Positions 169-61,077 of a DNA stretch of 64,000 bases are shown piece after piece. The DNA lies in the IMG/VR virus record IMGVR_UViG_3300050120_000152, positions 62,001 through 126,000 of that record; one strand, 5' to 3'. Within the stretch, counting starts at the first letter, position 1, and each line of letters begins with the position of its first letter. A program made the translations under genes and the position numbers. The notes beneath the pieces are model-generated. The model was not told the origin of the DNA. It did not search any database and saw only the letters and a program-made list of their open reading frames with translations.

Positions 169-1593
169 ATGAACAGTACATTTAAAACAGAATATTTGAA
201 CAACCTTACCGAGAATATGATTCTCGACGCAGATTCTTACAAGGCAAGCCATTTCGCTTTTCTTGAAGATGGTACTACAGACATTCGTCTATATATCGAG
301 GCCCGCACTGGTGCAAAGCATCAAGCTGTGGTAATGGCTGGTATCCAAGCCTTCAACAAAAAGTACATGATGAAGCCAATCACTCAATTTATGATTGATC
401 AGGCTGATTGGTTTCTTACCACTCATGGTGAGCCGTTTAATCGTGCTGGATGGGAATACGTGCTGAATTATCATGCTGGATATATGCCGGTCGTTATTAA
501 AAGCGCCGAAGAAGGCACCACTATCCCTATTGGTTGCCCGTACATCACCGTAGAGAACACTGACAAGCATCCTTTGGCTGCATGGTGCAGTTCGTACATT
601 GAAACGAAGATCATGCGTACATGGGCACCCATTGCTGTTGCAACACAGTCGAATCTTGTTCGCAAGCTTATCTTGGAATATCTTGAAAAGACTGGTACAC
701 CAGAATTGATTGATTATAAGATGGTTGATTTTGGTAGCCGTGGTGTTAGCTCTAAGGAAACTGCCGAAATTCTTGGTGCTGCTCATCTTACTAGTTTTCG
801 TTCTACAGATAATTTGATGGGCATTGCCCATGCAATGACATATTACAATGCTACTGAAATGTTGGGTGAATCTATCCCTGCCAGCGAGCATTCGGTGACC
901 TGTGCACGCGGCAAGGAAGGTGAACTTCAGTTCTATCTTGACATTGTTGATCGTTTCCTTGGTGAAGGTAAGATGGTATCGGTTGTTGGTGATACTTATG
1001 ACCTTGATGTTATGCTTGATATGCTAGGAACTATGGTTAAGCCATATTTGCTTGCAAAGGGTGGCACATGGGTAGTTCGTCCAGATAGTGGTGATCCTGT
1101 TCTTCAGGTCATGCAAACTATTCGCAAGTTGGAATTATATTTTGGTACAACTACCAATGATAAGGGCTATAAGGTTCTTCATCCTTCTGTTAGAATCATT
1201 CAAGGAGATGGTGTAGATGCTGCGTCGATCCATCGTATCTTGGTGGCTCTTGAGACGGCACATTATAGTGCGGACAATATCACATTTGGTTCGGGTGGTT
1301 GGTTGCTACAGTCGTTGAATCGTGACACCAATCGTACTGCCATGAAAGCATCGTATGTTGAAGTGGGTGATCGTAAGCTTGAAATCCGTAAGGAAGTCAA
1401 AACTGACCCAAGCAAGGCTTCGAAAGCTGGACGTGTTACTACTGTACTTCGCAACGGTAAGAAAATCTGTGTCAAGGAAGATGATATGATTGAAGGCGAT
1501 ATTGATCTTCTTAATGAAACCTATCGTGATGGTGAAGTCTTGAATTTGATTGACTTTGCGACAGTACGAGAGAACGTAAAAGCTGGGAAGTGA
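169..1593 (+). CDS. nadV: Nicotinamide phosphoribosyltransferase (NAMPT/NadV family)
   Basis: DSYKASH, DFGSRG, SIPASEHS, VVGDTYD, VVRPDSGDP, IIQGDGV and FGSGG motifs typical of NAMPT; GGAG RBS upstream. Confidence 0.93.
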   Translation: MNSTFKTEYLNNLTENMILDADSYKASHFAFLEDGTTDIRLYIEARTGAKHQAVVMAGIQAFNKKYMMKPITQFMIDQADWFLTTHGEPFNRAGWEYVLNYHAGYMPVVIKSAEEGTTIPIGCPYITVENTDKHPLAAWCSSYIETKIMRTWAPIAVATQSNLVRKLILEYLEKTGTPELIDYKMVDFGSRGVSSKETAEILGAAHLTSFRSTDNLMGIAHAMTYYNATEMLGESIPASEHSVTCARGKEGELQFYLDIVDRFLGEGKMVSVVGDTYDLDVMLDMLGTMVKPYLLAKGGTWVVRPDSGDPVLQVMQTIRKLELYFGTTTNDKGYKVLHPSVRIIQGDGVDAASIHRILVALETAHYSADNITFGSGGWLLQSLNRDTNRTAMKASYVEVGDRKLEIRKEVKTDPSKASKAGRVTTVLRNGKKICVKEDDMIEGDIDLLNETYRDGEVLNLIDFATVRENVKAGK

Positions 1594-2158: not shown

Positions 2159-2522
2159 CAAATGGCTACCAATATCCAAAGCTCCGAAAGATGGGACTAT
2201 GATTTTAGTCACTGAAACTCCAAATGGTGAACATTGGAATGTTATCCCAGCATGTTGGATGGCATTAACCAGTTATACAGAATCGGACAAAGAAGCTTTT
2301 GAAAATGGTGGGTTTAATCCAGATAATAGCCATAAAGGATATTGGTGGGGCATTTGTGCTACTCGTTATTCACGAGAAGGGCCATTATACACACGATTTA
2401 AGCCCTTAGCTTGCACTCCAATTTGTTGGATGCCTTTTCCTGAAGCTGAATCTGAAAATAAATTGCGTCGTAGACTTTCTCAATTATATAGGAACCCACC
2501 GTATAGGAACACACAGTTATGA
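2151..2522 (+). CDS. DUF551-like phage protein
   Basis: WLPISKAPKDGTMILV N-terminus and PICWMPFP C-terminal motif. Confidence 0.6.
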   Translation: MNNKWLPISKAPKDGTMILVTETPNGEHWNVIPACWMALTSYTESDKEAFENGGFNPDNSHKGYWWGICATRYSREGPLYTRFKPLACTPICWMPFPEAESENKLRRRLSQLYRNPPYRNTQL

Positions 2523-3370
2523 TAACGATTAAAACCCAAAAATTAATTGATGATGTGGCACACTGGTTTGCTGATCGTCATCTTAATCATGCTGTGGTTG
2601 GATATTCAGGTGGTATCGATTCCGCTACCACAGCAGCATTGCTAGATGCTGCAAAAATTAAGACTACTATTGTTCAGGTTGGATTCAAAGGACAAAAATT
2701 TTCCTCTACAACGTTAGCCATGGAAATGTGTGGTGGTCGGAAATACATGCGTTGGGAATATATTGATATGCCTCCTATTAGCATATTTTTTGGTGATGCT
2801 GGTAAGGAGGCTGTGCTTCCTATTATTCGTAATGCTTATTTTTATGGTGTTGCAGCAGAATTACGTGAATCGGGAGAACGTCCTATTATTGTTGGAACAG
2901 CAAATTTTGATGAAGCATCATTTTTAGGATTTTGGGGGAAGGCTTCGGATGCTGCACAAGATTTTTATCCTATCAGCCATCTGCACAAATCTGAAGTTTA
3001 TGCTTTAGCTAAGGAATTGAATGTTCCACAAGAAATCATCAAAGCTGTGCCATCGGGTGATCTTCAATGGTCAGGAGAGCTTAATGATTATAAAATGATC
3101 GGAGCTACCTACGATCAAATTGAAGCATTGGTCAAGTTTGTGGATACACCAAAATGGAAAGGTCTATTTGAAATCATCGATTTCATTAAAAATACTGTCG
3201 ATAACCCCAAATGTTTTGTTAAAAATATTAGCAAGAATGCATTTAAATATGATCTACCCTTTCCCGGCTTCCACATTAATAATCGTCTTGAATTTTTCCG
3301 TAGAGAATATTATAGAAACATTCTGGTAGCTTCAATTTCATTAGAAATAGAGTTTGATTATCCTTATTAA
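2519..3370 (+). CDS. nadE: NH3-dependent NAD+ synthetase
   Basis: PP-loop GYSGGIDS, GTANFDE, GFWGK..D, PISHLHKSEVYALAKEL, PSGDL. Confidence 0.85.
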   Translation: MITIKTQKLIDDVAHWFADRHLNHAVVGYSGGIDSATTAALLDAAKIKTTIVQVGFKGQKFSSTTLAMEMCGGRKYMRWEYIDMPPISIFFGDAGKEAVLPIIRNAYFYGVAAELRESGERPIIVGTANFDEASFLGFWGKASDAAQDFYPISHLHKSEVYALAKELNVPQEIIKAVPSGDLQWSGELNDYKMIGATYDQIEALVKFVDTPKWKGLFEIIDFIKNTVDNPKCFVKNISKNAFKYDLPFPGFHINNRLEFFRREYYRNILVASISLEIEFDYPY

Positions 3371-6793: not shown

Positions 6794-7330
6794 ATGGAAA
6801 CTCTTGAATTTAACAAAAATTTTGAATTAAGCAAACATGCAAAGTATTTCATTATGCTTGTTGGTTTGCCGGGTAGCGGAAAAAGCACTTGGTTGCAGGG
6901 AGTTCGCAATACTCAAATTATCATGAATACTGGTGTAAGTTTCGATGTTATCTCCACTGATGATATTATCGAAAAAATTGCTAAAGATCGTGGTCTTACC
7001 TATTCAGATGTTTGGTCTGAATCCATCAAAGGTGCGACCAAGGGAATGCATGAAAATTTTCAAAATGCTATCAGACATAATCATAATGTCATTTGGGATC
7101 AAACCAATTGCACTTCTAAGAAGCGTAAATCGGTAATAGTTCAAGTGCCTAATGATTATTACAAAGTTGCTGTAGTGTTTAATACTCCATTGGATGAAAT
7201 TGAACGTCGCCTTAAGGCTCGTGCTTTGGAAACTGGAAAAAACATCCCCAAGTCAGTATTACTAAATATGTATGATACCTTTGAACAACCGACACACGGA
7301 GAAGGTTTCGATTTCATCAACCAAGAATAA
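6794..7330 (+). CDS. P-loop kinase (AAA_33 / polynucleotide-kinase-like)
   Basis: MLVGLPGSGKST, ISTDD, IWDQTN...R, RLKAR. Confidence 0.8.
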   Translation: METLEFNKNFELSKHAKYFIMLVGLPGSGKSTWLQGVRNTQIIMNTGVSFDVISTDDIIEKIAKDRGLTYSDVWSESIKGATKGMHENFQNAIRHNHNVIWDQTNCTSKKRKSVIVQVPNDYYKVAVVFNTPLDEIERRLKARALETGKNIPKSVLLNMYDTFEQPTHGEGFDFINQE

Positions 7331-11100: not shown

Positions 11101-12288
11101 ATGTTGGGTCTTTTTTTATTTTTAATAATCATGTCTTTTCTGGTTGCTGTAGTATGCCGTTATGGCTTTCCAAATCGGTTTAATAATTTCGAAACCTGTC
11201 TAATCATAGGTGGTTCCCTATTGTGCGGCTTACTTCTTATGGGTATCGTCTCGTGGAATGCTACATCAGATTATGATGTTCTTAATGGACAGGTCACAAG
11301 CAAAGTTATGGAACGTGTAAGCTGTTCCCACAGTTATCAATGCCATTGTCATACAGTGAGTTCAGGTTATGGTAAAAGTCGTTCTTCACATACTGAATGT
11401 GATACTTGTTATGAACATCCGTATGATCAAGATTGGGTTGTAAAATCGACCATTGGAAATTTTGATATCAATCGTGTAGACCGCCAAGGTCTTGATGAAC
11501 CTCATCGCTGGACTATTGTAAATAAGAATGATCCAGTATCGGATACCGAAACTGTAAGAAATTACGTGTTGGCTGCACCAAATAGCTTGTTCAATGTGTC
11601 TAAATTTGCTAACGATAATGCTACTTTCGGTAAATATTTTCCATCGTATCCCAAAGTATATGATTACTACCACTTTGATCATGTCATCAATATGGGTGTG
11701 ACTGGACTTAAGATTAAAGATTATAATGTTGCTATGGCCGATATTATGCGAAACATTGGCCCCGCTAAACAAGCTAATATTGTTGTGGTGTTTGTTCCAA
11801 TTGATAATCGTGCCTACTTACAAGCATTAGAGCGTCATTGGCTTGGTTCCAAAAAGAATGATATTGTGGTAGTTATCGGAATCACTCATTATCCGCAGAT
11901 CGCATGGGCTGGTGCGTTCACATTCGGCAAGAGTGCTAAGAATGAATTGCTTGTAGTGAAAATGCGTGATACCATCGAAAATGTAAATGATGTATCAAAG
12001 GTGGATGATGTTGTAGCTCAGATCAAAGTTAATGCTGAATATTATTATAATCGCCAATCAATGAGTAACTATGAATACCTCAAACACGATTATTTCCCTA
12101 GTTCGAAAGCATTAATTATTTCTGGTGTGTTCTATCTTATCGTCTTACTAGCTTTGTTGGTGTTTTTCTGGCTCAAAGACGTTACCATGAATGGTATTGC
12201 AAATGGTGAAACATCAGGTTATAATGGTAACACAAGCAAATCGTTCTCAAATCTCAATCGTTTCAATAACTCAAGGAAATTCAAATGA
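11101..12288 (+). CDS. Membrane protein with a Cys/His-rich extracytoplasmic region
   Basis: Two N-terminal and one C-terminal TM helices; CSHSYQCHC...CDTCYEH. Confidence 0.7.
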   Translation: MLGLFLFLIIMSFLVAVVCRYGFPNRFNNFETCLIIGGSLLCGLLLMGIVSWNATSDYDVLNGQVTSKVMERVSCSHSYQCHCHTVSSGYGKSRSSHTECDTCYEHPYDQDWVVKSTIGNFDINRVDRQGLDEPHRWTIVNKNDPVSDTETVRNYVLAAPNSLFNVSKFANDNATFGKYFPSYPKVYDYYHFDHVINMGVTGLKIKDYNVAMADIMRNIGPAKQANIVVVFVPIDNRAYLQALERHWLGSKKNDIVVVIGITHYPQIAWAGAFTFGKSAKNELLVVKMRDTIENVNDVSKVDDVVAQIKVNAEYYYNRQSMSNYEYLKHDYFPSSKALIISGVFYLIVLLALLVFFWLKDVTMNGIANGETSGYNGNTSKSFSNLNRFNNSRKFK

Positions 12289-15534: not shown

Positions 15535-16722
15535 ATGAAAATTTTTAAGGTAGGTGGAAGCATTCGTGATTTCTTTCTAAAAAAGACTCCACACGATCAT
15601 GATTATGTAGTCGTGGGTGCAACACCTTCTGAAATGGAATCTATGGGCTATAAACAAGTCGGTAAGGACTTCCCGGTCTACTTGCATCCTGATACTGGCG
15701 AAGAGTACGCGTTGGCTCGTACAGAGCGTAAAACAGGCTTGAAGCATACTGATTTTGATACAGTGTTTGATACTTCGGTAACCATTGAAACTGACCTTGC
15801 CAGACGTGATTTAACGATAAATTCTATTGCGCAAGATTTGGAAACTGGTGAATACATCGATCCATTCAATGGCATTCAAGATATTGAAAATAAAGTGCTG
15901 CGTCATACCACGGAAGCCTTCAAGGAAGACCCATTGCGTGTATTGCGTTTGGGACGTTTCTGTGCAAAATTTCCAGATTTTGAAGTGGCCGATGATACAG
16001 ATACAATGGTAAATCATATGATTGCCCGTGGTGAATTGGAGCATTTGTCCAAGGATCGTGTGTGGGAAGAAACTAAGAAAGCAGTGTTGTCAAAAGAACC
16101 GTTTAAATATTTTCTATTCTTACATCATGTGGAAGCATTACAATATGCTGTCATCGGTGGAAATATGATTACGGCTGAATTTGCTGAAGCGTTTAAGCGG
16201 ATTACCGAGTCTACTGAAAAAATGCCAGATGATGAAAAACTGTTGTGTCGTATGGCAGTCGTTTATTACCATTTGGGTACTTTATATAAATTGCAGTATC
16301 AATCTAACAAAGCTGCTACAGCAGAATTGAATACATGGAAAATTCCAACAGAAATTGCAGAATTTATTCAATTGGTGAATACTAAAGCATATGCGCTGAC
16401 GCATACTATTTTTAATTATAAGAATTTAGTTGAAATTATGGATGATATTGGAGTACGTAATAGAATTCAGAAGAATGACAGTTTCTTACAGAATTTGGGT
16501 TTAGTGTGTAACGCAATTTATCCAACAAAAGATATGTCTGCTACATATGACCCTGAATGGAATATTAAACATTTTATTGAACATGTACCATGCTATTTCG
16601 ATACCAAGGAAGCATTGGCCGAATGGATGGATGTAAATAAGCATGCTACAGGTAAAGAAATCAATGACAGATTGAAATTGATTAGAATACAAAATATGTT
16701 TTTAAATAGAGCTACACTATGA
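15535..16722 (+). CDS. cca: tRNA nucleotidyltransferase (CCA-adding enzyme, class II)
   Basis: VGGSIRD, DHDYVVVGA, VGKDFPV, EYALARTERK, DLARRDLTINSIA, EDPLRVLR. Confidence 0.95.
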   Translation: MKIFKVGGSIRDFFLKKTPHDHDYVVVGATPSEMESMGYKQVGKDFPVYLHPDTGEEYALARTERKTGLKHTDFDTVFDTSVTIETDLARRDLTINSIAQDLETGEYIDPFNGIQDIENKVLRHTTEAFKEDPLRVLRLGRFCAKFPDFEVADDTDTMVNHMIARGELEHLSKDRVWEETKKAVLSKEPFKYFLFLHHVEALQYAVIGGNMITAEFAEAFKRITESTEKMPDDEKLLCRMAVVYYHLGTLYKLQYQSNKAATAELNTWKIPTEIAEFIQLVNTKAYALTHTIFNYKNLVEIMDDIGVRNRIQKNDSFLQNLGLVCNAIYPTKDMSATYDPEWNIKHFIEHVPCYFDTKEALAEWMDVNKHATGKEINDRLKLIRIQNMFLNRATL

Positions 16723-21327: not shown

Positions 21328-21843
21328 ATGAATGTGAAATTGGAAACCTTAAGTGAAGCATTAAAAGAAAGCCCAACACGCGGTACATATGTTGCTGTAA
21401 ATTTTTCAAAAGATACTGCCAAGCGAATAAAAGCTTTTATTAAAAAGTATAATATTCCTAACCCATTAGCAACCAACAAATTACATACGACTATCATTTA
21501 TTCAAGAAAATATTTACCCGAGTTTAAGACTCAGGGTAAATTGGATGAGCCGTGGGTAGGTAAGCCATCAAAATTAGAAATTTTTAAAAGTAGAGAAGGT
21601 AATAACTGCTTAGTGGTATTATTTACCTGTAAGGAAGCTGTTGCTCGCCATAAAGAAATAATGAAAGACCATGAAGCTACCTACGGTTTTCCAGAATTTA
21701 AAACACATTTTACATTGTCCTACGATTCTGGGGATTTCGACCCAGACTCTATCAAAAATCTTAAAGATGAACTTGGTGATATTGAAATTGTTGAAGAATA
21801 TACAGAAGATTTGAACTTGGATTGGGCTAAAAAATCCAGTTAA
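21328..21843 (+). CDS. acb1: Anti-CBASS 2H phosphodiesterase (Acb1 / T4 57B-like)
   Basis: GTYVAVNFS, PNP...LHTTIIYSR, HFTLSY and EYTEDLNLDWA follow the T4 57B layout with two HxT motifs. Confidence 0.85.
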   Translation: MNVKLETLSEALKESPTRGTYVAVNFSKDTAKRIKAFIKKYNIPNPLATNKLHTTIIYSRKYLPEFKTQGKLDEPWVGKPSKLEIFKSREGNNCLVVLFTCKEAVARHKEIMKDHEATYGFPEFKTHFTLSYDSGDFDPDSIKNLKDELGDIEIVEEYTEDLNLDWAKKSS

Positions 21844-27757: not shown

Positions 27758-28150
27758 TCCAAAGTAATTTGGATTATGATTGTAAAGATATCGTAAGGTA
27801 TCTGAGATTGTGAGTAATAAAGGGCCGCGACACGAGGGTTCGACTCCCTCCATCTCCACCACATATGTTCTTTACTGTTGCAACAGTAACGCTAGACGCC
27901 TATCAACTCCCTTCGAAAGGAGCCATGTGTAGGATGAGACAAGCCCAATGATGGCGCGGAAGAACATAGCTGATGGGGATGCAATGGCTTCGACCGGGGT
28001 TAGAATAGACAAACAGACAATCCGTTTAGAATGGTACGTTATACCTTAAAAAACTATAAATGCTTCTAACGATGCGATTTATTCAATGGAATACAGCTTA
28101 GCTGCTTGAAATTGATGGGGTTTAATCCACCTTATTACCCAACAAGATTA
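27758..28150 (+). ncRNA. ssrA: Circularly permuted (two-piece) tmRNA; outer ends approximate
   Basis: Acceptor piece ends GAGGGTTCGACTCCCTC-CATCTCC-ACCA (27861); coding piece starts GGGGATG (27975) giving G3:U70; tag ORF 28062-28109 encodes ASNDAIYSMEYSLAA*. Confidence 0.92.
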
Positions 28151-28517: not shown

Positions 28518-29279
28518 ATGAATTATAGTAAAAATGCGGCAATGGAACTAGCAACACAGATTCTCAAATCACAAAATCCCACACAAATGGGTGGCGGCTT
28601 GGATGAACTTTTTCAATTAGATTTGGGACAACCGGATAGAAAAATCAAACATTTCAAACAAACAATTCCGGTCAATATCCATCATTTTTATATTGTTGAA
28701 GATATCAAAGAAGTTGATTATTATTTAAGCATGATCAACACAATTAGAACAGCAGAACAACATGATACCATATTCATTTACTTGAATACTCCCGGTGGAA
28801 ATCTACATACTGCCATACAAATTATTGCAGCTATTAGACAATCATCCGCAACTGTTGTAACATGTCTTGAGGGCGTTGTATGCTCGGCTGGTACAATGAT
28901 TTTCTTAGCTGGTCACAAGCATGTAGTTAATCAAAATTGTACATTCATGATCCACAACTATTCTCAATGGGTAGGTGGTAAGGGTAATGACATTACGATT
29001 CAGGTAAAATATACAGAATCTTATTTTAGAAAATTATCAGAAGATATTTATGGTAAATTCTTATCTAAGGATGAAATTGAATCAGTATTGGAGGGTAAAG
29101 ATTTATGGATGGAAAGTTCTGATGTTGCAAGACGTGTTAAAGATAAATTAATAGCACAAGAAGCACCCGAAGATTCAGTTCCAGCCGTACATCAGCCTGC
29201 ACCATCTGTAGATGCAACAGAACCTGTTGTACCTATTAAACCAAAACGTAAACGAGTAGCCTCAAAGAAAAAAGTGTGA
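28518..29279 (+). CDS. ClpP-like serine protease (S14)
   Basis: YLNTPGG, VCSAGTMIFLAG (catalytic Ser), FMIHN, KDLWM. Confidence 0.85.
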   Translation: MNYSKNAAMELATQILKSQNPTQMGGGLDELFQLDLGQPDRKIKHFKQTIPVNIHHFYIVEDIKEVDYYLSMINTIRTAEQHDTIFIYLNTPGGNLHTAIQIIAAIRQSSATVVTCLEGVVCSAGTMIFLAGHKHVVNQNCTFMIHNYSQWVGGKGNDITIQVKYTESYFRKLSEDIYGKFLSKDEIESVLEGKDLWMESSDVARRVKDKLIAQEAPEDSVPAVHQPAPSVDATEPVVPIKPKRKRVASKKKV

Positions 29280-34244: not shown

Positions 34245-35069
34245 TTAGATATTATTTGTATCAGTGTCATTAAAATCGAAATACTGTTCCACTTCATTAA
34301 TTACAGCGTGGCACTTCTCTAGGTCAAATTTGTTATCAGTACGAACCCCAGATTCCATATCAATATAATAGGATTCAATACGAAAACCATCATATTTCCC
34401 GGTTTCCGTGTTGATTAATTTCAGGACGTTTGAGATATTTCCCGGTTTTAATCCACCAGCATAACCAGTTAAAATATCCTTATAAGGGCGTTTAACCACT
34501 TCGATTTCACGTCCAAAACCACCAGAACCATCATAGAGAATATTAATATTAGGCATAACACCAGAGATAGATGCTTCTTGATTCATTCGTTTAACTAATT
34601 TTGTAATAAACTCTTCTTTAGATTTGTTACTTTGTAAAATTAATGGAAATGAATGTTTATGACTGACTTCTAATACATTGTCAATAAGTTCTTCAATATT
34701 AGTAAAATTATTCATCGCAAAATTTAATTGGATTCTTGAACTGCAACCCATGTCAATAAATTCATTATCAGATTTTAAATAACGATTTACGGCATCTTCG
34801 CCGCAAAGATGTAAGGATGTTGTAATGCTTTTAGGAAACAATTTAGCAATAGACTCTTTTATAAAATTCAATGGTGGATAACGGATATCAGTTGTCAATG
34901 AACGCGTTTTACTGAATAAAAATCCAAACTCAATAAAAGGAGGATTATTCATATATTCAAAAGTATCTACAGCATTTAAATCCAAATCTATTAATTTGAG
35001 TAAATCAGTTGATTCATCAACACCAACAAATGAGATTAATTCTAACATAGACATATCCTTAAAGAACAC
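34245..35069 (-). CDS. TIM-barrel protein, phosphoribosylanthranilate-isomerase-like
   Basis: SLHLCG, RIQLNF, LYDGSGGFG, GYAGGLKPGN, IDMESGVRT. Confidence 0.65.
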   Translation of the reverse strand: MFFKDMSMLELISFVGVDESTDLLKLIDLDLNAVDTFEYMNNPPFIEFGFLFSKTRSLTTDIRYPPLNFIKESIAKLFPKSITTSLHLCGEDAVNRYLKSDNEFIDMGCSSRIQLNFAMNNFTNIEELIDNVLEVSHKHSFPLILQSNKSKEEFITKLVKRMNQEASISGVMPNINILYDGSGGFGREIEVVKRPYKDILTGYAGGLKPGNISNVLKLINTETGKYDGFRIESYYIDMESGVRTDNKFDLEKCHAVINEVEQYFDFNDTDTNNI

Positions 35070-35442
35070 TTGGTATAGCAGTTATTGTAATAGGGGTAAA
35101 ATGAACAATTTTATCAGCTTCTTTAACCAATATATTAGAATCGACAGGCTTGTAACCTAATTCCGAATCCAATGAATGTGTAATATGAAAAATTTTTCCA
35201 TCAGGTCTAATCGTTTCACCATCCACATTAGTCAAAAAACATTCTAGACCATCCCCACTATCGATATATCCAATAATTTTAATGGACGTTGCTTCCTTTG
35301 GTAATGGAGCATCCATAGGAACATTGAAGACCACCGTAATATGATGACATAATACTTTTTTATATTTTGGTGGAAACTTTTCAAGTAATAAATTTCTTGA
35401 TTTTTCAGATAATAGATAGCAGCTATACATGATAAGTCCCAT
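35059..35442 (-). CDS. 2H phosphoesterase (RNA 2',3'-cyclic phosphodiesterase-like)
   Basis: Two HxT motifs (HHITVVF, FHITHS) and KPVDSN. Confidence 0.7.
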   Translation of the reverse strand: MGLIMYSCYLLSEKSRNLLLEKFPPKYKKVLCHHITVVFNVPMDAPLPKEATSIKIIGYIDSGDGLECFLTNVDGETIRPDGKIFHITHSLDSELGYKPVDSNILVKEADKIVHFTPITITAIPSVL

Positions 35443-46691: not shown

Positions 46692-47258
46692 ATGACCTTC
46701 ATCATCAAGAAAACTAGCTCGTCTTTCAAATATCTTTCACGTTGGAAGAATAATTACAAAGCATTTGCTAAAGACGGTAAGTTTGTATGGTATTATAATG
46801 ATAGTATTGATGCTAGTGACTGGTATTCTCGGAATATTGCAAGAGATTTTTGTTCCTATTATCATGATGTATTAAAATTAATGTTTTTTCATTTTTGTAT
46901 ATCATTATTGGTTCCGTCATTGTTAATTCTTGTATTAATGTTATTTGGTGGAATTTATGTCCCACCAAATGTAACATTAACATCATTATTGTATATTATC
47001 GCAAGTTTGCCAGCAACAATGGGGGTATTATTTTGTGTAGCATTTGTGGTGGTAGCTTTCATAGAAAATGTATGGCCTAAAATTAAAAATTGGGTTAGAA
47101 AATTGTTACCTGAACGTAAGCCACGTCCTGATGCATCAAATAACACACCAAAACAACCCAGTGTGCTTGCAATGTGGTATGATGGCTTCAAGGGCAATTT
47201 CTGCTCCACTATTGAATTTGAAGTAGAGAACCATGATCAAACTATTCACCCCGAATAA
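46692..47258 (+). CDS. Membrane protein
   Basis: DFCSYY + 2 TM + FKGNFCS. Confidence 0.65.
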   Translation: MTFIIKKTSSSFKYLSRWKNNYKAFAKDGKFVWYYNDSIDASDWYSRNIARDFCSYYHDVLKLMFFHFCISLLVPSLLILVLMLFGGIYVPPNVTLTSLLYIIASLPATMGVLFCVAFVVVAFIENVWPKIKNWVRKLLPERKPRPDASNNTPKQPSVLAMWYDGFKGNFCSTIEFEVENHDQTIHPE

Positions 47259-47853
47259 TAGTAAACCTTGGACAGGTAATTTTGCGATTGCCTGTTCTGG
47301 TGGTTTTGATAGTATGGCAGTTGCACATTTCTTTATTAAAGGAAAACGTAAGCCTACTATTTTGCATGTAAATCATTCAACGGGAAATGATGCAGCAGAA
47401 GCTGAAGTATTACATTTTTGCACTCAGAATGAGTTGAAAATGTTTACTTATAAAGTTAATCCTGCGGATAAGCTTAAGAAAGAGTCTTGGGAAGAATTTT
47501 GGCGTAATGAAAGAATCAAGGCTTTTCGAACAGTAGACATGCCAGTGATCACAGGTCATAATTTGGATGATGCTATGGAAACTTGGATGTTTGGGGCTAT
47601 GCATGGGCAACCAAAGCTTATTCCATACAACACCAACAATGTTTATAGACCTTTCTTGCTTACTCCGAAGGATGATCTTCGCAATTATTGCATTAAGCAT
47701 AAGATTAGCTGGAATGAAGATAAAAGTAACAAAGATAATAAGTATGCTCGTAATAGAATTCGCAACAATATCATGCCAGAAGTATTAAAAATCAACGCCG
47801 GTTTCCCCACAGTTGTCGCCCGTAAATATAGAGAAATGTATGAAAAATCCTGA
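47233..47853 (+). CDS. tilS: tRNA(Ile)-lysidine synthetase, minimal PP-loop domain
   Basis: ACSGGFDS, HVNH, RNER, TGHNLDD.MET, RPFL, EDKSN, RNRIR. Confidence 0.88.
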   Translation: MIKLFTPNNSKPWTGNFAIACSGGFDSMAVAHFFIKGKRKPTILHVNHSTGNDAAEAEVLHFCTQNELKMFTYKVNPADKLKKESWEEFWRNERIKAFRTVDMPVITGHNLDDAMETWMFGAMHGQPKLIPYNTNNVYRPFLLTPKDDLRNYCIKHKISWNEDKSNKDNKYARNRIRNNIMPEVLKINAGFPTVVARKYREMYEKS

Positions 47854-52140: not shown

Positions 52141-52761
52141 ATGCTTTCCAACATTGAAAAAACCCGTATTGCACTCTATCATTGGATGCTTGGAAAAGGC
52201 TTTTTCATTGCTTCCGAAGCCATGGCTTATGCTGAAAACACACATGTAGGTTTCCGTAAGGATGGTGTCACGCCAGCTTTTGCTCACCAGATTTGGATTG
52301 CTAATCGTATCCGTACATTCAATCTTCCCGATGATGTAATGGAACTCTGCCTCATTTTGGCGTTCTTACATGATACTGCTGAAGATTATGATGTAGGTTT
52401 TGAAGAATTTAATGCAAAGTATGGTGCTGTTGTTGCTGATGGTGTTCGTCGTTTGACGAAAAAGCATCGCGGGATGGTTATCCCAAAAGAAACTTATTTC
52501 AGTGATTTGGCACTCATGGCGGCTGCAGCTATCGTAAAAGGTGTAGATCGTTTGCATAACCTTTCTACGATGATTGGAGTGTTCAATCCTGCGAAACAGA
52601 TGGATTATATTGCAGAAACTATGTTGTTCCATTTGCCTATGCTTAAGAAAGCTCGAAAAAGCTTCCCTATGTATTGGCAGGCTTTTGAAAGCATCAAACA
52701 GGCTATCAATGATAAAATGGAAATGGTCAATATGATTCTTAAACTTGAGGCAAAATCATGA
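52141..52761 (+). CDS. HD-domain (p)ppGpp hydrolase (small alarmone hydrolase-like)
   Basis: H.G.RKDG.TP...H, LHDTAED, LTK, VKGVDRLHNL, YIAET. Confidence 0.85.
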   Translation: MLSNIEKTRIALYHWMLGKGFFIASEAMAYAENTHVGFRKDGVTPAFAHQIWIANRIRTFNLPDDVMELCLILAFLHDTAEDYDVGFEEFNAKYGAVVADGVRRLTKKHRGMVIPKETYFSDLALMAAAAIVKGVDRLHNLSTMIGVFNPAKQMDYIAETMLFHLPMLKKARKSFPMYWQAFESIKQAINDKMEMVNMILKLEAKS

Positions 52762-55331: not shown

Positions 55332-55403
55332 GGCCTATTCGGCGAATCCGAACTGAAGTCTTCGAAACTTTATGGAAGTGTTTGACTCACTTATGGGCCT
55401 CCA
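55332..55403 (+). tRNA. tRNA-Arg(TCG), atypical D-arm and T-loop
   Basis: GGCCTAT/ATGGGCC acceptor; AAGT-CTTCGAA-ACTT; T-loop TTTGACT; CCA. Confidence 0.7.
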
Positions 55404-55411
55404 AATTATAT

Positions 55412-55492
55412 GGCCTCGTAACGAGCAAGGTTTCTACCCTTGACAATCGTAATTGGATGTAAATGGGGGTTCGAATCCCTCCGGGGCCACCA
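55412..55492 (+). tRNA. D-armless tRNA-like RNA, anticodon TCT (Arg)
   Basis: GGCCTCG/CGGGGCC acceptor; 7-nt connector instead of a D-arm; CAAGG-TTTCTAC-CCTTG; long extra arm; canonical T-arm; CCA. Confidence 0.65.
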
Positions 55493-55513: not shown

Positions 55514-56209
55514 ATGATCATTATGAAAATACAATACTTAATTGAAGATTTAGTAAACGCTGACATTGCCAGAAAGAGATTCAACGGCACGCTCAAGCGT
55601 AAAGATACTGGTTACGCTTTAAGTGGAAAACAATTAAGTAATGGCTCTCAAGCATCTGTAAAAGCTGATCCTAATGACCCTCATATGATCAAGAAACATA
55701 ATACCAAAGTATATCCCGAAAAGTCTATAATACAAGGCTTTAAGCCAACCAGAGCTAATGACGGATTCAATGATTATATTGAATATCTTATCAATAATAA
55801 TCTCACTGATAATATCCATTTTCCCAAAGTATATAATGTAAAAACTATCATAGATAAGAATGGTGATAAAATCCATACTTATACCATGGAAAGATTGATA
55901 GAAACTGACACATTAACGGTAGAACAGATCGAAGCTTTTCTTGAAAATAATTTATCAGAAAAATGGCAAGACTCCGTAAAATGGACAAGTCATCCTATTG
56001 AATATGTAGTTAGATTAATTACAAATTGTATACAAGGGACTAGAGATATGGATGAAATTTTTACGAATAAAGAATTAATTTCTGCAATCTCAATCATAAA
56101 ACAAATTAAAAATACTATATCTGCTCAAATTGACCTTTCAGTGCATAATATTATGTGGCGCAGAACACCATATGGAATGATTTTGGTATTCACTGACCCA
56201 TTTTTTTGA
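55514..56209 (+). CDS. Protein-kinase-like protein
   Basis: HFPKVY, YTMERL, DLSVHNIM, VFTDP. Confidence 0.65.
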   Translation: MIIMKIQYLIEDLVNADIARKRFNGTLKRKDTGYALSGKQLSNGSQASVKADPNDPHMIKKHNTKVYPEKSIIQGFKPTRANDGFNDYIEYLINNNLTDNIHFPKVYNVKTIIDKNGDKIHTYTMERLIETDTLTVEQIEAFLENNLSEKWQDSVKWTSHPIEYVVRLITNCIQGTRDMDEIFTNKELISAISIIKQIKNTISAQIDLSVHNIMWRRTPYGMILVFTDPFF

Positions 56210-56655: not shown

Positions 56656-57730
56656 TGGGATATTTTATTGATGACGATGGGTTGAACAAAGCTTGCACCC
56701 ATCCCGAACACAATCCACCATCCATGCTTTATGTTCCCTATGGGAAAGTTTATATCCATGAATGTCCTCAGTGCGGTAGCTGCACTAGACTTCAATCATC
56801 TGATGTGACGATGTAATCTTATGAGTCCTTTTTATGATGCCGTGTATGCGCTATTCTTGGCAATGGCTGTTTTGGTATGTGCCGCATTCACTTTCAAGTG
56901 TGGTATGATGATTCATGATGCTGGATTGACATATTCAACCATAATAGGTATGATAGGTTTCTCAGTCAATGGCATCATTACCGCTGTCATGCTCTGGTAT
57001 CATATCAAAACTGGTAACAATAACCTGTATTAGGAATATGTATGACATATACAATAGATGACCTTTGGCAAGCAGTTTATGTCTTCATCCCATCTTTTAA
57101 GAAGGCGCGAGAAGCTGGCGTAAACATGAATCTGCCTTCATCACTGAATAGTGCAATCATTGCATGGTCAGCATTGCGTTTTGCTTGTGATAAGGATGGA
57201 GCATTACCAAATACCCTATTCATTAACGCAGCAAATGTATTGCATACTGCCCATAACGATTTGCACACCCATAGTCAACTTATGCCATCGGATAATAATT
57301 ATGCAGATGTTTAATTGGAAGAAACATCCTGAGAATATTCCTTCGTATAAAGAGCAAATTTTAAAACTGTGTAATGATGATAATAATGTAGACTTAGATA
57401 CGCTTTTTGGAATTTATCTAGGTTATCCACGTTGTTGCATTGAATCACTTGCTGCTGGACATTGGGCAAAGGCTGGTTTACCATGCACTGGTACAGGATA
57501 CGTTCCATGTTTTGAATGCCGTAAAAAACCTGAAGAAGAATTGCTTGATTACATTGAAAAATACAGATTATGTGACTTGCCATTTCCCGAATGTGATGAT
57601 ATCATGGGTCACCAACATTTCACCGATATGGTTTTGTACGGTGATCTTATAAATATTGCTACTTACTAAAAATATTTAGAATTATAAATACTTGATATAA
57701 TGATGTAAAGCTGTATACTAGGCACACAAC

Positions 57731-57817
57731 GGATCGGTAGCAGAATTGGTTAAATGCACTCGACTCATAATCGAGCGGAGAAATCCACTGAAGGTTCAAG
57801 TCCTTCTCGATCCACCA
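57731..57817 (+). tRNA. tRNA with CAT anticodon (Met or Ile2), long variable arm
   Basis: GGATCGG/TCGATCC acceptor; CTCGA-CTCATAA-TCGAG; GGA-GAAA-TCC extra arm; CCA. Confidence 0.85.
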
Positions 57818-57831
57818 TTTTTAAATAAAAT

Positions 57832-57981
57832 GGGACGTTAGCTCAATTGGTTAGAGCGATGACCTCTCCGGGAGAGTTTTAAGACTCTCCAATCTAACAG
57901 ATTTTTATAGTCTGTTACTTTGGGTAGTTTTCCCTAAAGATAAGTCATGGGTTGCTGGTTCAAGTCCAGCACGTCCCACCA
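57832..57981 (+). tRNA. tRNA gene interrupted by a 73-nt structured insert in the anticodon loop (Ile-GAT, CAT or Lys-CTT depending on the junction)
   Basis: Perfect acceptor, D and T arms; anticodon stem ATGAC/GTCAT encloses 80 nt. Confidence 0.85.
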
Positions 57982-59005
57982 TTCAAGAGAATAATCATGG
58001 ATTACAATTATAATCATGCTACTGAGAAAAAGTGTGCATGGTGTGATAAAATTGCTCCACGAACTGAATCATTTTGGCAATTTGCCGCTAATCTTCCTTT
58101 TCATTATGTCTGTAGTAACCAATGCGCTACAGACTTGAAGGATTATTTTGCTGCTCAAAAAGAGCTTAAAGAAGCAAAGAAAAAGTCTTGACAATCCATT
58201 ATATGGGTGTATAATTATCCAATGAAAACTCAAACCGACTACCAGAAATTTATCAAAGTGCTATATGAAGCATACGATGCTTCTTTAGAAGTAGATAATT
58301 TTGATCTTGATTCGTCAACGGCCAACAGCAAACAGGTATGGAATAGTTTGGTTAAACAACAGGCCCGAGCTTTTAATAAAATGTGTAATATGGCTAAAAA
58401 TAGCCCAATAGCAATACCACCTACACCCATTGGATTTTAATATGTCTAAAACATCAATAACCGGCATCTTTATTGGTGGCCCACATGCATGTGCAACCGT
58501 ATATGACATGGCTCATGTAGAAGTTGTTATCAAGGCATTATGTGAAGTCACTGGCGATGATCAGGATGATTATACGGCAACAGATTTGGATAACCCACAA
58601 GCTTTTAAATTTGACTTCAAAGCGTTCCTTGATCCGGTTTGGGTTAAGGCGAACGAAACCTTTAAAGAAGCTGACAAAGCCTTCAAAGCCGCAGAAAAGG
58701 CACTGGATGATGCTTTTGATTCAGCATTTGCATGGAAAAGCCACGATGACTAAGCAGCGGCGCAGCATTATCGAAGAATTTATGCTATCCAATGAATGGA
58801 TAGCTGCCGGACATTTGGAAAAAATGCATACTCGACAGCTTCTTTCTATAAAAAATAGCTTATTTATTTACTATGGTGGACGACATGATCTAACTGAACC
58901 ACTTTATGATAAAGTAAAAGCAATCCTTTCTACACGGGAGCATATCCCATCCAAAAAAGAGGCGAAAGAAATTCGCCAAGCTAAGGCTAAACAAGGACAC
59001 TAATT

Positions 59006-59404
59006 GTGAAAAATCCAACAGTCAAAGGCTTCATATCAGGACATTTCAATAAGCAGCAAGTTTATGATTTTGTTCGTGATAAACTTATTGCTCAAGAACG
59101 TGGTAGTGTGAACATCAACTATAGAGGATGTGCCTATCGTGGAGTAGATGGAGCGAAATGTGCAGTAGGTTGGCTTATTCCAGATAGGCAATATAATAAA
59201 GATATGGAAGGTGATGTTGACAATCTATTTAATTATTATAATATTGATACGCATTCAAACAAATCGACCGTCGATAAGTACGAGTTTTTAACTCGTCTAC
59301 AATCTGTGCATGATGCAATTGCTCATTTGGAGGGAAAAGCCTTCGTTAATTGTATTAAACCACGTTTAACCAGATTTGCATTAAAAAATGGTCTTAAGCC
59401 ATGA
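59006..59404 (+). CDS. Hypothetical phage protein
   Basis: CAYRG.DG.KCAVGWLIPD...LQSVHD. Confidence 0.65.
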   Translation: MKNPTVKGFISGHFNKQQVYDFVRDKLIAQERGSVNINYRGCAYRGVDGAKCAVGWLIPDRQYNKDMEGDVDNLFNYYNIDTHSNKSTVDKYEFLTRLQSVHDAIAHLEGKAFVNCIKPRLTRFALKNGLKP

Positions 59405-59724
59405 ATGATTTTTATGTAGGCACATCTGATATTGCCGGATTTGGTTGCTTCACCCGACGACCAGTTAAAGCCATGGAAAAATTTACCTTTTCTGTAGTAC
59501 CAATCCCCCGGACAACTCAGAGTCATCACAAATACCCATTTGATTCGACCCGCTCATGCATTATATTATCAGAATTTAGCTACTGCAATCATTCAAAATC
59601 TCCAAATGTTGAACCGATATCAATGGATATTACAAACATGGAAATCACGTTTGTATGTTTGAAGGATATCCAGCCATATTCTGAGTTAACATTTGATTAT
59701 GGTGATGGCAACGTATATCCTTAA
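59401..59724 (+). CDS. SET-domain lysine methyltransferase
   Basis: S.IAGFGCF, CNHSKSPN, KDI...ELTFDYG. Confidence 0.85.
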   Translation: MNDFYVGTSDIAGFGCFTRRPVKAMEKFTFSVVPIPRTTQSHHKYPFDSTRSCIILSEFSYCNHSKSPNVEPISMDITNMEITFVCLKDIQPYSELTFDYGDGNVYP

Positions 59725-60090: not shown

Positions 60091-61077
60091 ATGGAAAAGT
60101 TTACATCAATTGAATCCCTCAAGCATATTGTCGCCAATGTGCGCAAGCATTACAACAAGATCGCTAAACCGTTCCCTACCCTCAATTTTACGGGTACGGT
60201 GAAGCTTCATGGCACAAACGCATCAGTAATGCGCAAACATTCTGGCAAACTTCAACCACAATCGCGTGAACGCATTCTTGATGTTACATCTGACAATTAT
60301 GGCTTTGCCATGTTTATTGAATCCAACAAGGAAGCCGTTAATAATCTCTTCAGTGCCTTCCCCAATGATATTGATGTTACGCTCTATGGTGAGTGGTGTG
60401 GTGGTAATATCCAGCCTGCTGTAGCTCTTACACAGGTTCCAAAGCATTGGGTATTATTTGCTGTTAAGTATGGTGTCGGTGAAGATGCCAAATATATGAA
60501 ATTATCAAATGTTGTGCATAATAATGCATATGGTATTTACAATATTGCACAGATTCCATCGTACCATGTAGAAATTAATTTTCTTTCGCCTGAACCAGCA
60601 TCAGAAATTCTTGCTGATTTGACTCTTAAGGTTGAGCAAGAATGTCCATGGGCTACACTCATGTTCAATGTTTCCGGGATTGGTGAAGGTCTTTGCTGGG
60701 TCTGCGATGAACATCCTGAAATTAGTGATCTATGGTTTAAGACCAAGGGCATGCTTCACAAGGGCAATGATAAAACCAAAGTACCGAAAATTAAGATTGA
60801 TGACCAGAAACTTGCTTCTATTATGGAAGTAGTGAAGGAAGTCTTGCCACAATGGCGTCTTGAACAGGGTATTTCGCATCTTCGTGATGAAGGTATCCCA
60901 TTGCTTCCACAGGGTACGAGTGATTATTTGAAATGGATTGCCAAAGATATTCTCAAGGAAGAAGTTGACACTATTGCAGCCAGTGGTTTTGACTGGAAGG
61001 GTATCAATGGTTCTGTCATGCAAACTGCACGTCAGTATTTCTTGACAGCTATTCAGCAGAATTTTGAGGAAGTATAA
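60091..61077 (+). CDS. RNA ligase (Rnl2-like)
   Basis: KLHGTNA, QSR, DNYGFA, LYGEWCG, GEGLCW, FKTKG. Confidence 0.85.
   Translation: MEKFTSIESLKHIVANVRKHYNKIAKPFPTLNFTGTVKLHGTNASVMRKHSGKLQPQSRERILDVTSDNYGFAMFIESNKEAVNNLFSAFPNDIDVTLYGEWCGGNIQPAVALTQVPKHWVLFAVKYGVGEDAKYMKLSNVVHNNAYGIYNIAQIPSYHVEINFLSPEPASEILADLTLKVEQECPWATLMFNVSGIGEGLCWVCDEHPEISDLWFKTKGMLHKGNDKTKVPKIKIDDQKLASIMEVVKEVLPQWRLEQGISHLRDEGIPLLPQGTSDYLKWIAKDILKEEVDTIAASGFDWKGINGSVMQTARQYFLTAIQQNFEEV

Follow-up and report, generated by a model that had tools for sequence, protein, structure and literature searches.

Bacterial-type tRNAs can be interrupted in the anticodon loop by group I introns, as in cyanobacterial tRNA-Leu(UAA) and in Azoarcus tRNA-Ile (for the latter, PMC13168695); these introns are sporadically distributed and need roughly 200 nt or more and a P1-P9 catalytic core. 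The intron of tRNA-Leu(UAA) lies between positions 34 and 35. In archaea and eukaryotes, short structured introns with a bulge-helix-bulge (BHB) motif are cut out by EndA/Sen endonucleases and the exons are joined by RtcB or Trl1. The textbook view is accordingly that bacterial tRNA introns are self-splicing group I introns and that protein-dependent tRNA splicing belongs to archaea and eukaryotes. Two further bacterial systems are related in part, namely the intervening sequences of 23S rRNA that are excised by RNase III, and the anticodon-loop repair of phage T4, in which a PrrC cut is healed by Pnkp and sealed by Rnl1.

Short introns that fit neither of the two splicing classes were flagged once in phage tRNAs, when Devoto et al. 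(2019; PMC6784885) reported 'enigmatic' inserts of 79-114 nt in tRNAs of Lak megaphages and stated that phage tRNA introns had not been reported before. These inserts have no Rfam hit, are missed by bacterial-mode tRNA finders, and are present in some related genomes and absent from others. This is the only precedent that we found; later papers merely repeat it, and the literature that we could search has not explained it.

Here, we analysed a 64,000-nt stretch of a 340-kb jumbo phage contig (IMG/VR record IMGVR_UViG_3300050120_000152, positions 62,001 to 126,000; hereafter the window, numbered from its first letter). It carries an intact tRNA gene with a CAU anticodon, most likely tRNA-Ile2, that is split directly after its wobble base by a 73-nt, three-hairpin intron. 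As this intron is far too small to be a classical self-splicing intron, bacteria or their phages probably possess a still undescribed way of splicing tRNA.

Results

A tRNA gene with a structured insert in the anticodon loop

A sequence-only reading of the window had proposed a flawless tRNA body whose anticodon stem encloses 80 nt with three hairpins, and this observation was confirmed. The Rfam tRNA model (RF00005) matches 57832-57978 over its full length (model positions 1-71) at 54.7 bits (E 5e-9, gathering threshold 29), with a 77-nt unaligned block inside the anticodon loop. ARAGORN with default settings does not report the gene, whereas ARAGORN with introns allowed (-i) calls a tRNA(cat) with a 73-nt intron between ...acctc and ataag.... 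The minimum-free-energy (MFE) fold of the arm gives exactly the three hairpins H1-H3 (Table 1) at -29.7 kcal/mol, with a z-score of -4.1 and none of 200 shuffled sequences as stable; the 150-nt gene gives a z-score of -4.8. A blastn-short search of the 80-nt insert against the window found only the insert itself and its own hairpin complement, which excludes an element repeated within the window, such as a MITE-like element.

Table 1. Features of the interrupted tRNA gene, its surroundings in the window, and the corresponding genes of the relative L196.
Feature	Coordinates	Strand	Description and support
Interrupted tRNA(CAU) gene	57832-57981	+	anticodon stem 57859-57863/57944-57948, enclosing 80 nt
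5' exon	57832-57866	+	G1 to wobble C34; acceptor 57832-38, D arm 57841-57, anticodon stem 5' strand 57859-63, C32 U33 C34 57864-66
Intron	57867-57939	+	73 nt, between C34 and A35; leader UCCG; H1 57871-78/57883-90 (loop holds UAAGA); linker AAUC; H2 57895-903/57909-17; H3 57918-24/57933-39 (loop holds AGUUU); last bases AG
3' exon	57940-57981	+	A35 U36 A37 A38, anticodon stem 3' strand 57944-48, variable loop, T arm, acceptor 3' strand, A73, encoded CCA 57979-81
Neighbouring tRNA(CAU)	57731-57817	+	no intron, long variable arm; Rfam 59.1 bits, ARAGORN
Sigma-70-like promoter	57692-57719	+	TTGATA-16-TATACT, 12 nt upstream of the tRNA pair; 10 of 12 consensus bases, a pattern match only
Rnl2-like ATP-dependent RNA ligase	60091-61077	+	2.1 kb downstream; PF09414, 1.5e-9, 38.7 bits (cut-off 27); PHROG 548 'RNA ligase', 5.9e-49; NCBIfam Rnl2 (TIGR02307) 31.5 bits (cut-off 197), residues 2-140 only; motif KLHGTN, with the motif I lysine, invariant between homologues
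tRNA(Ile)-lysidine synthase TilS	47233-47853	+	short, 206 aa; TIGR02432 lysidine_TilS_N, 115.2 bits (cut-off 93.6); PF01171, 1.1e-30
AAA_33 P-loop kinase	6794-7330	+	possible 5'-OH RNA kinase (weak); Pfam AAA_33, 1.7e-23; PHROG 505 'polynucleotide kinase', 1.7e-13; NCBIfam Pnkp hits far below cut-off
ORF with two HxT motifs	35059-35442	-	127 aa; phrog_36523, unknown function; no Pfam or PDB hit; single-sequence AlphaFold2 model pLDDT 36
CCA-adding tRNA nucleotidyltransferase	15535-16722	+	Pfam PolyA_pol, 1.1e-19; NCBIfam CCA addition/repair protein, 1.9e-87, N-terminal half
Permuted tmRNA	27806 (start)
ClpP-like protease	28518 (start)
Counter-defence genes: Acb1, NAD salvage	21328, 169, 2519 (starts)
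HNH endonuclease genes	5640, 7342
L196, first CAU tRNA	11419-11579		long variable arm, homologous 74-nt intron at the C34/A35 site
L196, second CAU tRNA	11588-11664		no intron, loop CTCATAA

Intron boundaries and tRNA identity

To place the insert exactly, we looked for relatives of the phage; a search for homologues with and without the insert had been proposed beforehand as a check. Direct searches at the DNA level gave none: there was no blastn match in the INPHARED phage-genome collection, exact and gapped patterns in IMG/VR returned only the source contig, the one hit in a collection of genome contigs (L209) is a chance match inside a coding sequence, and plasmids gave nothing relevant. 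A protein search with the neighbouring ORF 57151 found only itself under a length filter that hid an 86-aa homologue. A search with the TilS protein was successful and led to L196 (ENA ERZ25073694 ctg129202), which contains this homologue and is syntenic with the window from TilS to the RNA ligase at 30-85% protein identity.

L196 has the same pair of CAU tRNAs at the orthologous spot, but with swapped occupancy, as its first gene carries an insert and its second gene, the orthologue of the interrupted gene, has none (Table 1). The alignment shows that both inserts enter at the same point, CUC|...|AUAA, so that excision restores a canonical loop, CUCAUAA, identical to that of the intron-less orthologues; for the window gene the predicted spliced junction reads ...GAUGACCUC|AUAAGUCAUGG.... 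Hence, of the three registers proposed by the sequence-only reading, Ile(GAU), Met/Ile2(CAU) and Lys(CUU), only CAU is supported. The Lys proposal is explained by the acceptor stem GGGACGU, which is shared mostly with phage tRNA-Lys(UUU), but D-loop length, N26, the variable loop and above all the orthologue point to CAU.

The best matches of the intron-less orthologue in 5,426 E. coli genomes are all genes annotated tRNA-Ile, at 82-84% identity, and the one that we retrieved has a CAT anticodon. The window tRNA spliced in silico is 63/76 identical to this gene, with an identical T arm. The phage encodes its own TilS, an enzyme that modifies C34 of tRNA-Ile2, the base immediately 5' of the intron, and AUA is used at 16.4 per 1000 codons in this 35% GC window. 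The gene is therefore most likely tRNA-Ile2, although this assignment rests on similarity and on the presence of TilS, and elongator tRNA-Met is not strictly excluded.

Is the interrupted gene a pseudogene? The spliced window tRNA differs from the L196 orthologue at 19 positions. Eighteen of these lie in stems and form nine double, pair-preserving changes, all 21 pairs are standard in both genes, and every loop is identical. This is the signature of a tRNA under purifying selection and not of a pseudogene.

The intron is a conserved structured RNA

A covariance model built from the window arm alone missed the L196 intron with default filters, but with filters off found it at L196 11447-11537 (28.3 bits, E 4.5e-6, 98.6-kb search) and nothing else. 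In the resulting alignment 98.2% of cells are paired and 13 of 28 pairs have changes on both sides, nine in H1-H3 and four in the anticodon stems, whereas sliding the 3' partners as a control leaves 29-44% of cells paired and 0-1 compensatory changes. These counts derive from only two sequences and from an alignment that was fitted to the model's structure. However, each isolated intron independently folds to the same plan, with z-scores of -4.7 (window) and -4.2 (L196): a 4-nt leader, H1, a 4-5-nt linker, H2 with a 5-nt loop and a conserved U-G pair, H3 directly abutting H2, and 0-1 nt before the 3' junction.

About 15 unpaired nucleotides are conserved between the two introns although their stems have diverged, namely the first U, UAAGAC in and around the H1 loop, AGUUU in the H3 loop and the terminal AG. 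AAGACU and AGUUU(U) are complementary (6 and 5 pairs), which allows either a loop-loop contact in a cloverleaf-like four-way junction or a rod-like alternative fold. In the rod, a 3-bp helix (U33-A35, C34-G(-1), U(+1)-A(-2)) sets the two junctions opposite each other; this fold is the MFE in L196 and costs +2.1 kcal/mol in the window, while covariation favours the three-hairpin fold, and the junction helix rests on conserved rather than covarying bases in only two sequences. Both intron-bearing genes have C31-G39, whereas the three intron-less CAU genes (the first window tRNA, the second L196 tRNA and that of a further relative, L194) have A31-U39, which could reflect a co-conversion tract or a structural requirement.

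The intron matches no Rfam intron or ribozyme family

No group I or group II intron and no Rfam ribozyme (including hammerhead, twister, hairpin, HDV-like, pistol and hatchet) was detected at gathering threshold or, for the isolated arm (57855-57952), at E<=10, where only chance miRNA and cis-regulatory hits appeared. Of the group I hallmarks, the terminal G is present, but the 5' exon ends in C34 rather than U, and the CUCUCC/GGAGAG complementarity of the window is absent from the L196 homologue, so that it is not a guide-sequence pairing. A BHB motif, i.e. two 3-nt bulges separated by a 4-bp helix, could not be drawn: a hand test of exon[-6..-3] against intron[-6..-3] at registers k=2-6 gave no pairing, and the intron does not lie at position 37/38.

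Genomic context and candidate processing enzymes

No terminator separates the two window tRNAs, and the window is an auxiliary region rich in RNA- and translation-related genes (Table 1). Of the healing and sealing enzymes named by the sequence-only reading, the ligase at 60091 was confirmed as a protein with an Rnl2-type nucleotidyltransferase domain. It lies 1-2 kb downstream of the CAU tRNAs in the window, L196 and L194, all three relatives that have them. This proximity is weak evidence, since the family is very common in phages (2806 homologues at E<=1e-20) and also occurs in relatives without a CAU tRNA in the flanks retrieved around the ligase; none of the further ligase-anchored relatives (L198-L207) has CAU tRNAs upstream of the ligase. 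The kinase at 6794 is an AAA_33 P-loop kinase with only weak polynucleotide-kinase similarity. The 2H phosphodiesterase proposed at 35059 shows two HxT motifs by eye, but neither profile nor structure searches support it, and its predicted model is unusable.

No endonuclease candidate for intron removal, and in particular no EndA-like protein, was found among about 60 ORFs scanned with Pfam, which are not all ORFs of the window and come from only 64 of the 340 kb. Of the neighbours, ORF 55514 looks like a T7-type protein kinase and ORF 57301 is a protein of unknown function.

Other short inserts in phage and metagenome tRNAs

Are such inserts found in other tRNAs? A search for the same D-arm/T-arm pattern, spaced as if by an insert, gave at least 78 distinct candidates in phage and metagenome contigs, of which 29 are half-tRNA duplications or adjacent tRNAs and 49 remain. 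Contig L005 has tandem tRNA-Asn copies with and without an insert of about 50 nt; L002 and L048 have nearly identical 51-nt introns with a T-arm mimic, and L075 and L072 carry similar tRNA-like modules. In a further class, including two genes on a 422-kb contig, the insert seems to split the anticodon stem at 28/29 and starts with UAA. L203 and L204, relatives of this phage, have a type-II tRNA, probably Leu-UAA, with a 43-nt hairpin intron at 34/35. These introns share no sequence, and some of the metagenome contigs may be archaeal. We considered excision of the tRNA-like introns by RNase P and RNase Z for L075, L002 and Lak, but the cut registers do not rebuild a 7-nt loop, and the window intron has no T-arm mimic.

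Discussion

Our analysis establishes the tRNA gene, the exact intron boundaries, the conserved fold, the homology to the L196 intron and purifying selection on the exons, whereas transcription, splicing, its catalysts and the modification of C34 are inferred. The intron belongs to a small family that occupies the same site in CAU tRNAs of related jumbo phages and is present or absent gene by gene. The sequence-only interpretation of a candidate protein-spliced intron is thus partly supported: the insert is a genuine intervening sequence in an otherwise intact, selectively maintained tRNA, it is too small for and unlike a group I intron, and an RNA ligase and a P-loop kinase are encoded in the window, but protein catalysis and a role of these enzymes remain hypotheses.

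We consider it likely that the intron is removed at the RNA level and, with less certainty, only somewhat more likely than not that this occurs by a protein route. In this view, the pre-tRNA would be made from the predicted promoter together with its neighbour, and two endonucleolytic cuts would occur at the base of the intron domain, where the 3-bp junction helix can set the two sites opposite each other. The nuclease could be a host structure-specific or dsRNA-specific RNase such as RNase III, for which the helices near the cut sites are however short, or an unidentified phage protein. The halves, held together by the tRNA body, would be sealed by the Rnl2-like ligase, with the P-loop kinase or a phosphoesterase healing the ends first if the cuts leave 5'-OH and cyclic phosphate; a cut leaving 3'-OH and 5'-P, as RNase III does, would need no healing. 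C34 would be converted to lysidine by the phage TilS so that the tRNA reads AUA. We prefer this route because unrelated short introns at several positions in phage tRNAs argue for a general enzyme, because the halves would stay together, and because the phage supplies a ligase.

The main rival, which we regard as possible but unlikely, is a new and very small self-splicing or self-cleaving RNA, in which the four-way junction formed with the anticodon stem and a contact between the H1 loop (UAAGAC) and the H3 loop (AGUUU) would build an active site that cuts, and possibly rejoins, at C34/U(+1) and G(-1)/A35, a ligase being needed only if the chemistry leaves cyclic-phosphate ends. The conserved unpaired motifs, the complementarity of the two loops, the conserved compact fold and the lack of a splicing endonuclease among the scanned ORFs speak for it. 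On the other hand, the isolated arm matches no Rfam ribozyme, no natural RNA of this size is known to perform both steps of splicing, loop conservation in only two sequences could simply reflect recent common descent, and the other short phage tRNA introns seen here (L002, L003, L005, L075, L203) share neither sequence nor fold, which argues for a general protein route.

It is doubtful that the insert is never removed and that the tRNA body, processed by RNase P and the CCA enzyme, serves as a stable scaffold displaying a three-hairpin decoy or sponge for a host anticodon nuclease or other tRNA-targeting defence, or a protein-binding module, as in the 'armoured tRNA mimic' alternative of the sequence-only reading. 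The hairpin fold is conserved, the window is rich in counter-defence and tRNA-related genes (Acb1, NAD salvage, CCA enzyme, ligase), and position 34/35 is where several anticodon nucleases cut. However, both intron-bearing genes preserve exactly the bases CUC and AUAA that would rebuild the loop of their intron-less orthologues and their anticodon-stem pairs covary, which is expected only if the spliced tRNA is used, and the element sits in different paralogous tRNAs in different phages while intron-less copies do the same job.

A selfish insertion, such as a mobile-element remnant or homing-type gene conversion between the two CAU tRNA genes, that has inactivated this copy and leaves the phage to rely on the neighbouring CAU tRNA or on the host is very unlikely, since the swapped occupancy, the C31-G39 pair resembling a co-conversion tract and the HNH genes of the window are outweighed by the compensatory changes in exons and intron, which a dead insertion would not need, by the absence of further copies in the window and by the lack of a target-site duplication, although mobility and splicing are not exclusive, as classical mobile introns do both.

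More broadly, it is slightly more likely than not that phages carry a class of compact (about 45-95 nt), structured, site-specific tRNA introns that are spliced inside bacterial cells by a route that is neither group I/II nor BHB. A demonstration of splicing would reveal either a new RNA-processing pathway in bacteria and phages or a new minimal ribozyme, and might give the enigmatic phage Rnl2-like ligases a natural substrate. As the intron abuts the very cytidine that TilS would turn into lysidine, splicing and decoding identity (Met versus Ile) could be coupled. With boundaries defined by an intron-less orthologue, a homologous intron in a paralogous tRNA that gives covariation support for the fold, conserved unpaired motifs, and a syntenic ligase and a TilS, the locus offers a compact test system. 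Since standard bacterial-mode tRNA and ORF pipelines miss such genes, phage tRNA repertoires and codon-supply inferences are undercounted.

How does this intron compare with the described systems? Like group I introns it interrupts the anticodon loop of a bacterial-type tRNA, and like that of tRNA-Leu(UAA) it lies between 34 and 35, but it has 73 nt, no Intron_gpI match and no internal guide pairing conserved between the two homologues. It shares with BHB introns a short structured insert in the anticodon arm and exon halves that would need a protein ligase, and the heal-and-seal idea of the sequence-only reading copies the Trl1 pathway, but no BHB motif can be drawn, the position is 34/35 instead of 37/38, and the host is bacterial, as indicated by the tmRNA and the sigma-70-like promoter. 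The intervening sequences of 23S rRNA are likewise helical inserts in a stable bacterial RNA that are cut out at their base, and a rod-like fold is energetically accessible here, but the helix at the cut sites is short and irregular, and rRNA fragments are not re-ligated, whereas a tRNA cut in its anticodon must be. In T4, phage-encoded kinase and ligase act on a break in a tRNA anticodon loop, and the window ligase shares the Rnl2-type nucleotidyltransferase domain with T4 Rnl2 although it scores far below the Rnl2 equivalog cut-off; there, a host tRNA is restored after one cut, whereas here two cuts would remove 73 nt from a phage tRNA. The Lak introns are closest, as both are inserts of tens of nucleotides in the anticodon loop of phage tRNAs, absent from orthologues in related phages and without an Rfam family. 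They share no sequence similarity, and the phage lineages differ, this one having 35% GC, a permuted tmRNA and, as a bare count, TAG at the end of only 3 of 66 ORFs. The Lak introns, as predicted by Devoto et al., lie 3' of the anticodon and contain a tRNA-like acceptor stem plus a GGTTCGAATCC T arm, a module also present in L002, L048, L075 and L072, whereas the intron described here lies at 34/35 and, like its L196 homologue, lacks this module and consists of three plain hairpins.

Other RNA and translation genes of the phage

The tRNA next to the interrupted gene is of unclear amino-acid identity; it has a CAU anticodon but carries a long, type-II-like variable arm (CGGAGAAAUCCAC), which is unusual for Met or Ile tRNAs. 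This architecture is conserved in L196, the syntenic relative, where it is this copy that carries the intron, while a search of E. coli sequences returned no match for it. A tRNA-Arg(UCU) of the window also showed an odd architecture: there is a short region where the D arm should be, and a segment of roughly 22 nt after the anticodon arm contains a D-loop-like AATTGGAT. ARAGORN and Rfam disagree on the 5' end of this gene (97 nt versus 78 nt).

We further found a phage-encoded two-piece (permuted) tmRNA (Rfam 88.9 bits; ARAGORN tag ASNDAIYSMEYSLAA), followed by a ClpP-like protease gene. A permuted tmRNA is also present on L002, another phage contig with an intron-bearing tRNA. The TilS of the phage, with 206 aa, consists only of the N-terminal PP-loop domain, and as homologues at 40-75% identity occur on many contigs of 60-370 kb, it is a conserved feature of this jumbo-phage group.

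The NAMPT-like and NAD synthase genes (NAD salvage) and an Acb1 anti-CBASS phosphodiesterase look like counter-defence content. A T7-kinase-like protein (an atlas lead, TM 0.74), a SET-domain protein and a SpoT/RelA-type HD hydrolase could all act on host physiology. Just downstream of a small Zn-ribbon-like ORF lies a perfect consensus sigma-70 promoter, matching at 12 of 12 positions (TTGACA-16-TATAAT).

Coordinates of the additional features in the window and on other contigs
Sequence	Position	Feature
Window	57731-57817	tRNA(CAU) with long variable arm
L196	11419-11579	tRNA(CAU) with long variable arm, intron-bearing
Window	27806-28109 and 28518-29279	Permuted tmRNA, followed by ClpP-like protease gene
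L002	828-1125	Permuted tmRNA
Window	55396-55492	tRNA-Arg(UCU)
Window	47233-47853	TilS
Window	169-1593, 2519-3370, 21328-21843	NAMPT-like and NAD synthase genes, Acb1
Window	57997-58191	Small Zn-ribbon-like ORF
Window	58188-58215	Consensus sigma-70 promoter
Window	55514-56209, 59401-59724, 52141-52761	T7-kinase-like protein, SET-domain protein, SpoT/RelA-type HD hydrolase
L005	3832-3954 and 3960-4033	Tandem tRNA-Asn(GUU) genes
L005	1146-1274	Intron-bearing tRNA-Ile(UAU)
L002	3641-3770 (approximate)	Intron-bearing tRNA, probably Thr-CGU
L048	5865-5990 (approximate)	Intron-bearing tRNA, probably Thr-CGU
L203	10746-10873	Intron-bearing type-II tRNA, probably Leu-UAA
L204	7131-7258	Intron-bearing type-II tRNA, probably Leu-UAA

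Interrupted tRNA genes on other contigs

In a relative of this phage (L203 and L204; ligase 69% identical), the type-II tRNA carries a 43-nt hairpin intron at or near 34/35, and a tRNA with a UCA anticodon, called 'SeC' by ARAGORN, lies next to it. On L005, a 35-kb phage contig, the tandem tRNA-Asn genes are identical in the anticodon arm, yet one of them carries an insert of about 50 nt at 37/38 or 38/39 and the other does not. The ends of this insert (TCCCAG/CTGGGA) stack on the anticodon stem, and the tRNA-Ile(UAU) is a second intron-bearing tRNA on the same contig.

The two probable tRNA-Thr genes, on L002 and on a further contig, L048, share an almost identical 51-nt intron (3 differences) with a T-arm mimic GGGTTCGA(T/G)TCCC, although their acceptor stems differ at 4 of 7 positions. 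The intron is more conserved than the exon.

A further, recurrent class comprises tRNAs in which 45-60 nt appear to be inserted inside the anticodon stem, between positions 28 and 29 (L050, L082, L099, L123, L061, L064, L067, L100 and L125). The insert always follows ...GAGC-N-CG and starts with TAA or TAT, and the class occurs in several isotypes and twice on one huge contig (L050, 422 kb). No BHB motif fits these genes.

At many metagenome loci (L007, L015, L017, L028, L051, L053, L069, L103, L105, L116 and others), the tRNA gene is followed or preceded by a duplicated half of itself, as expected at integration sites or after endonuclease-driven recombination. These loci mimic intron-bearing tRNAs in simple pattern scans.
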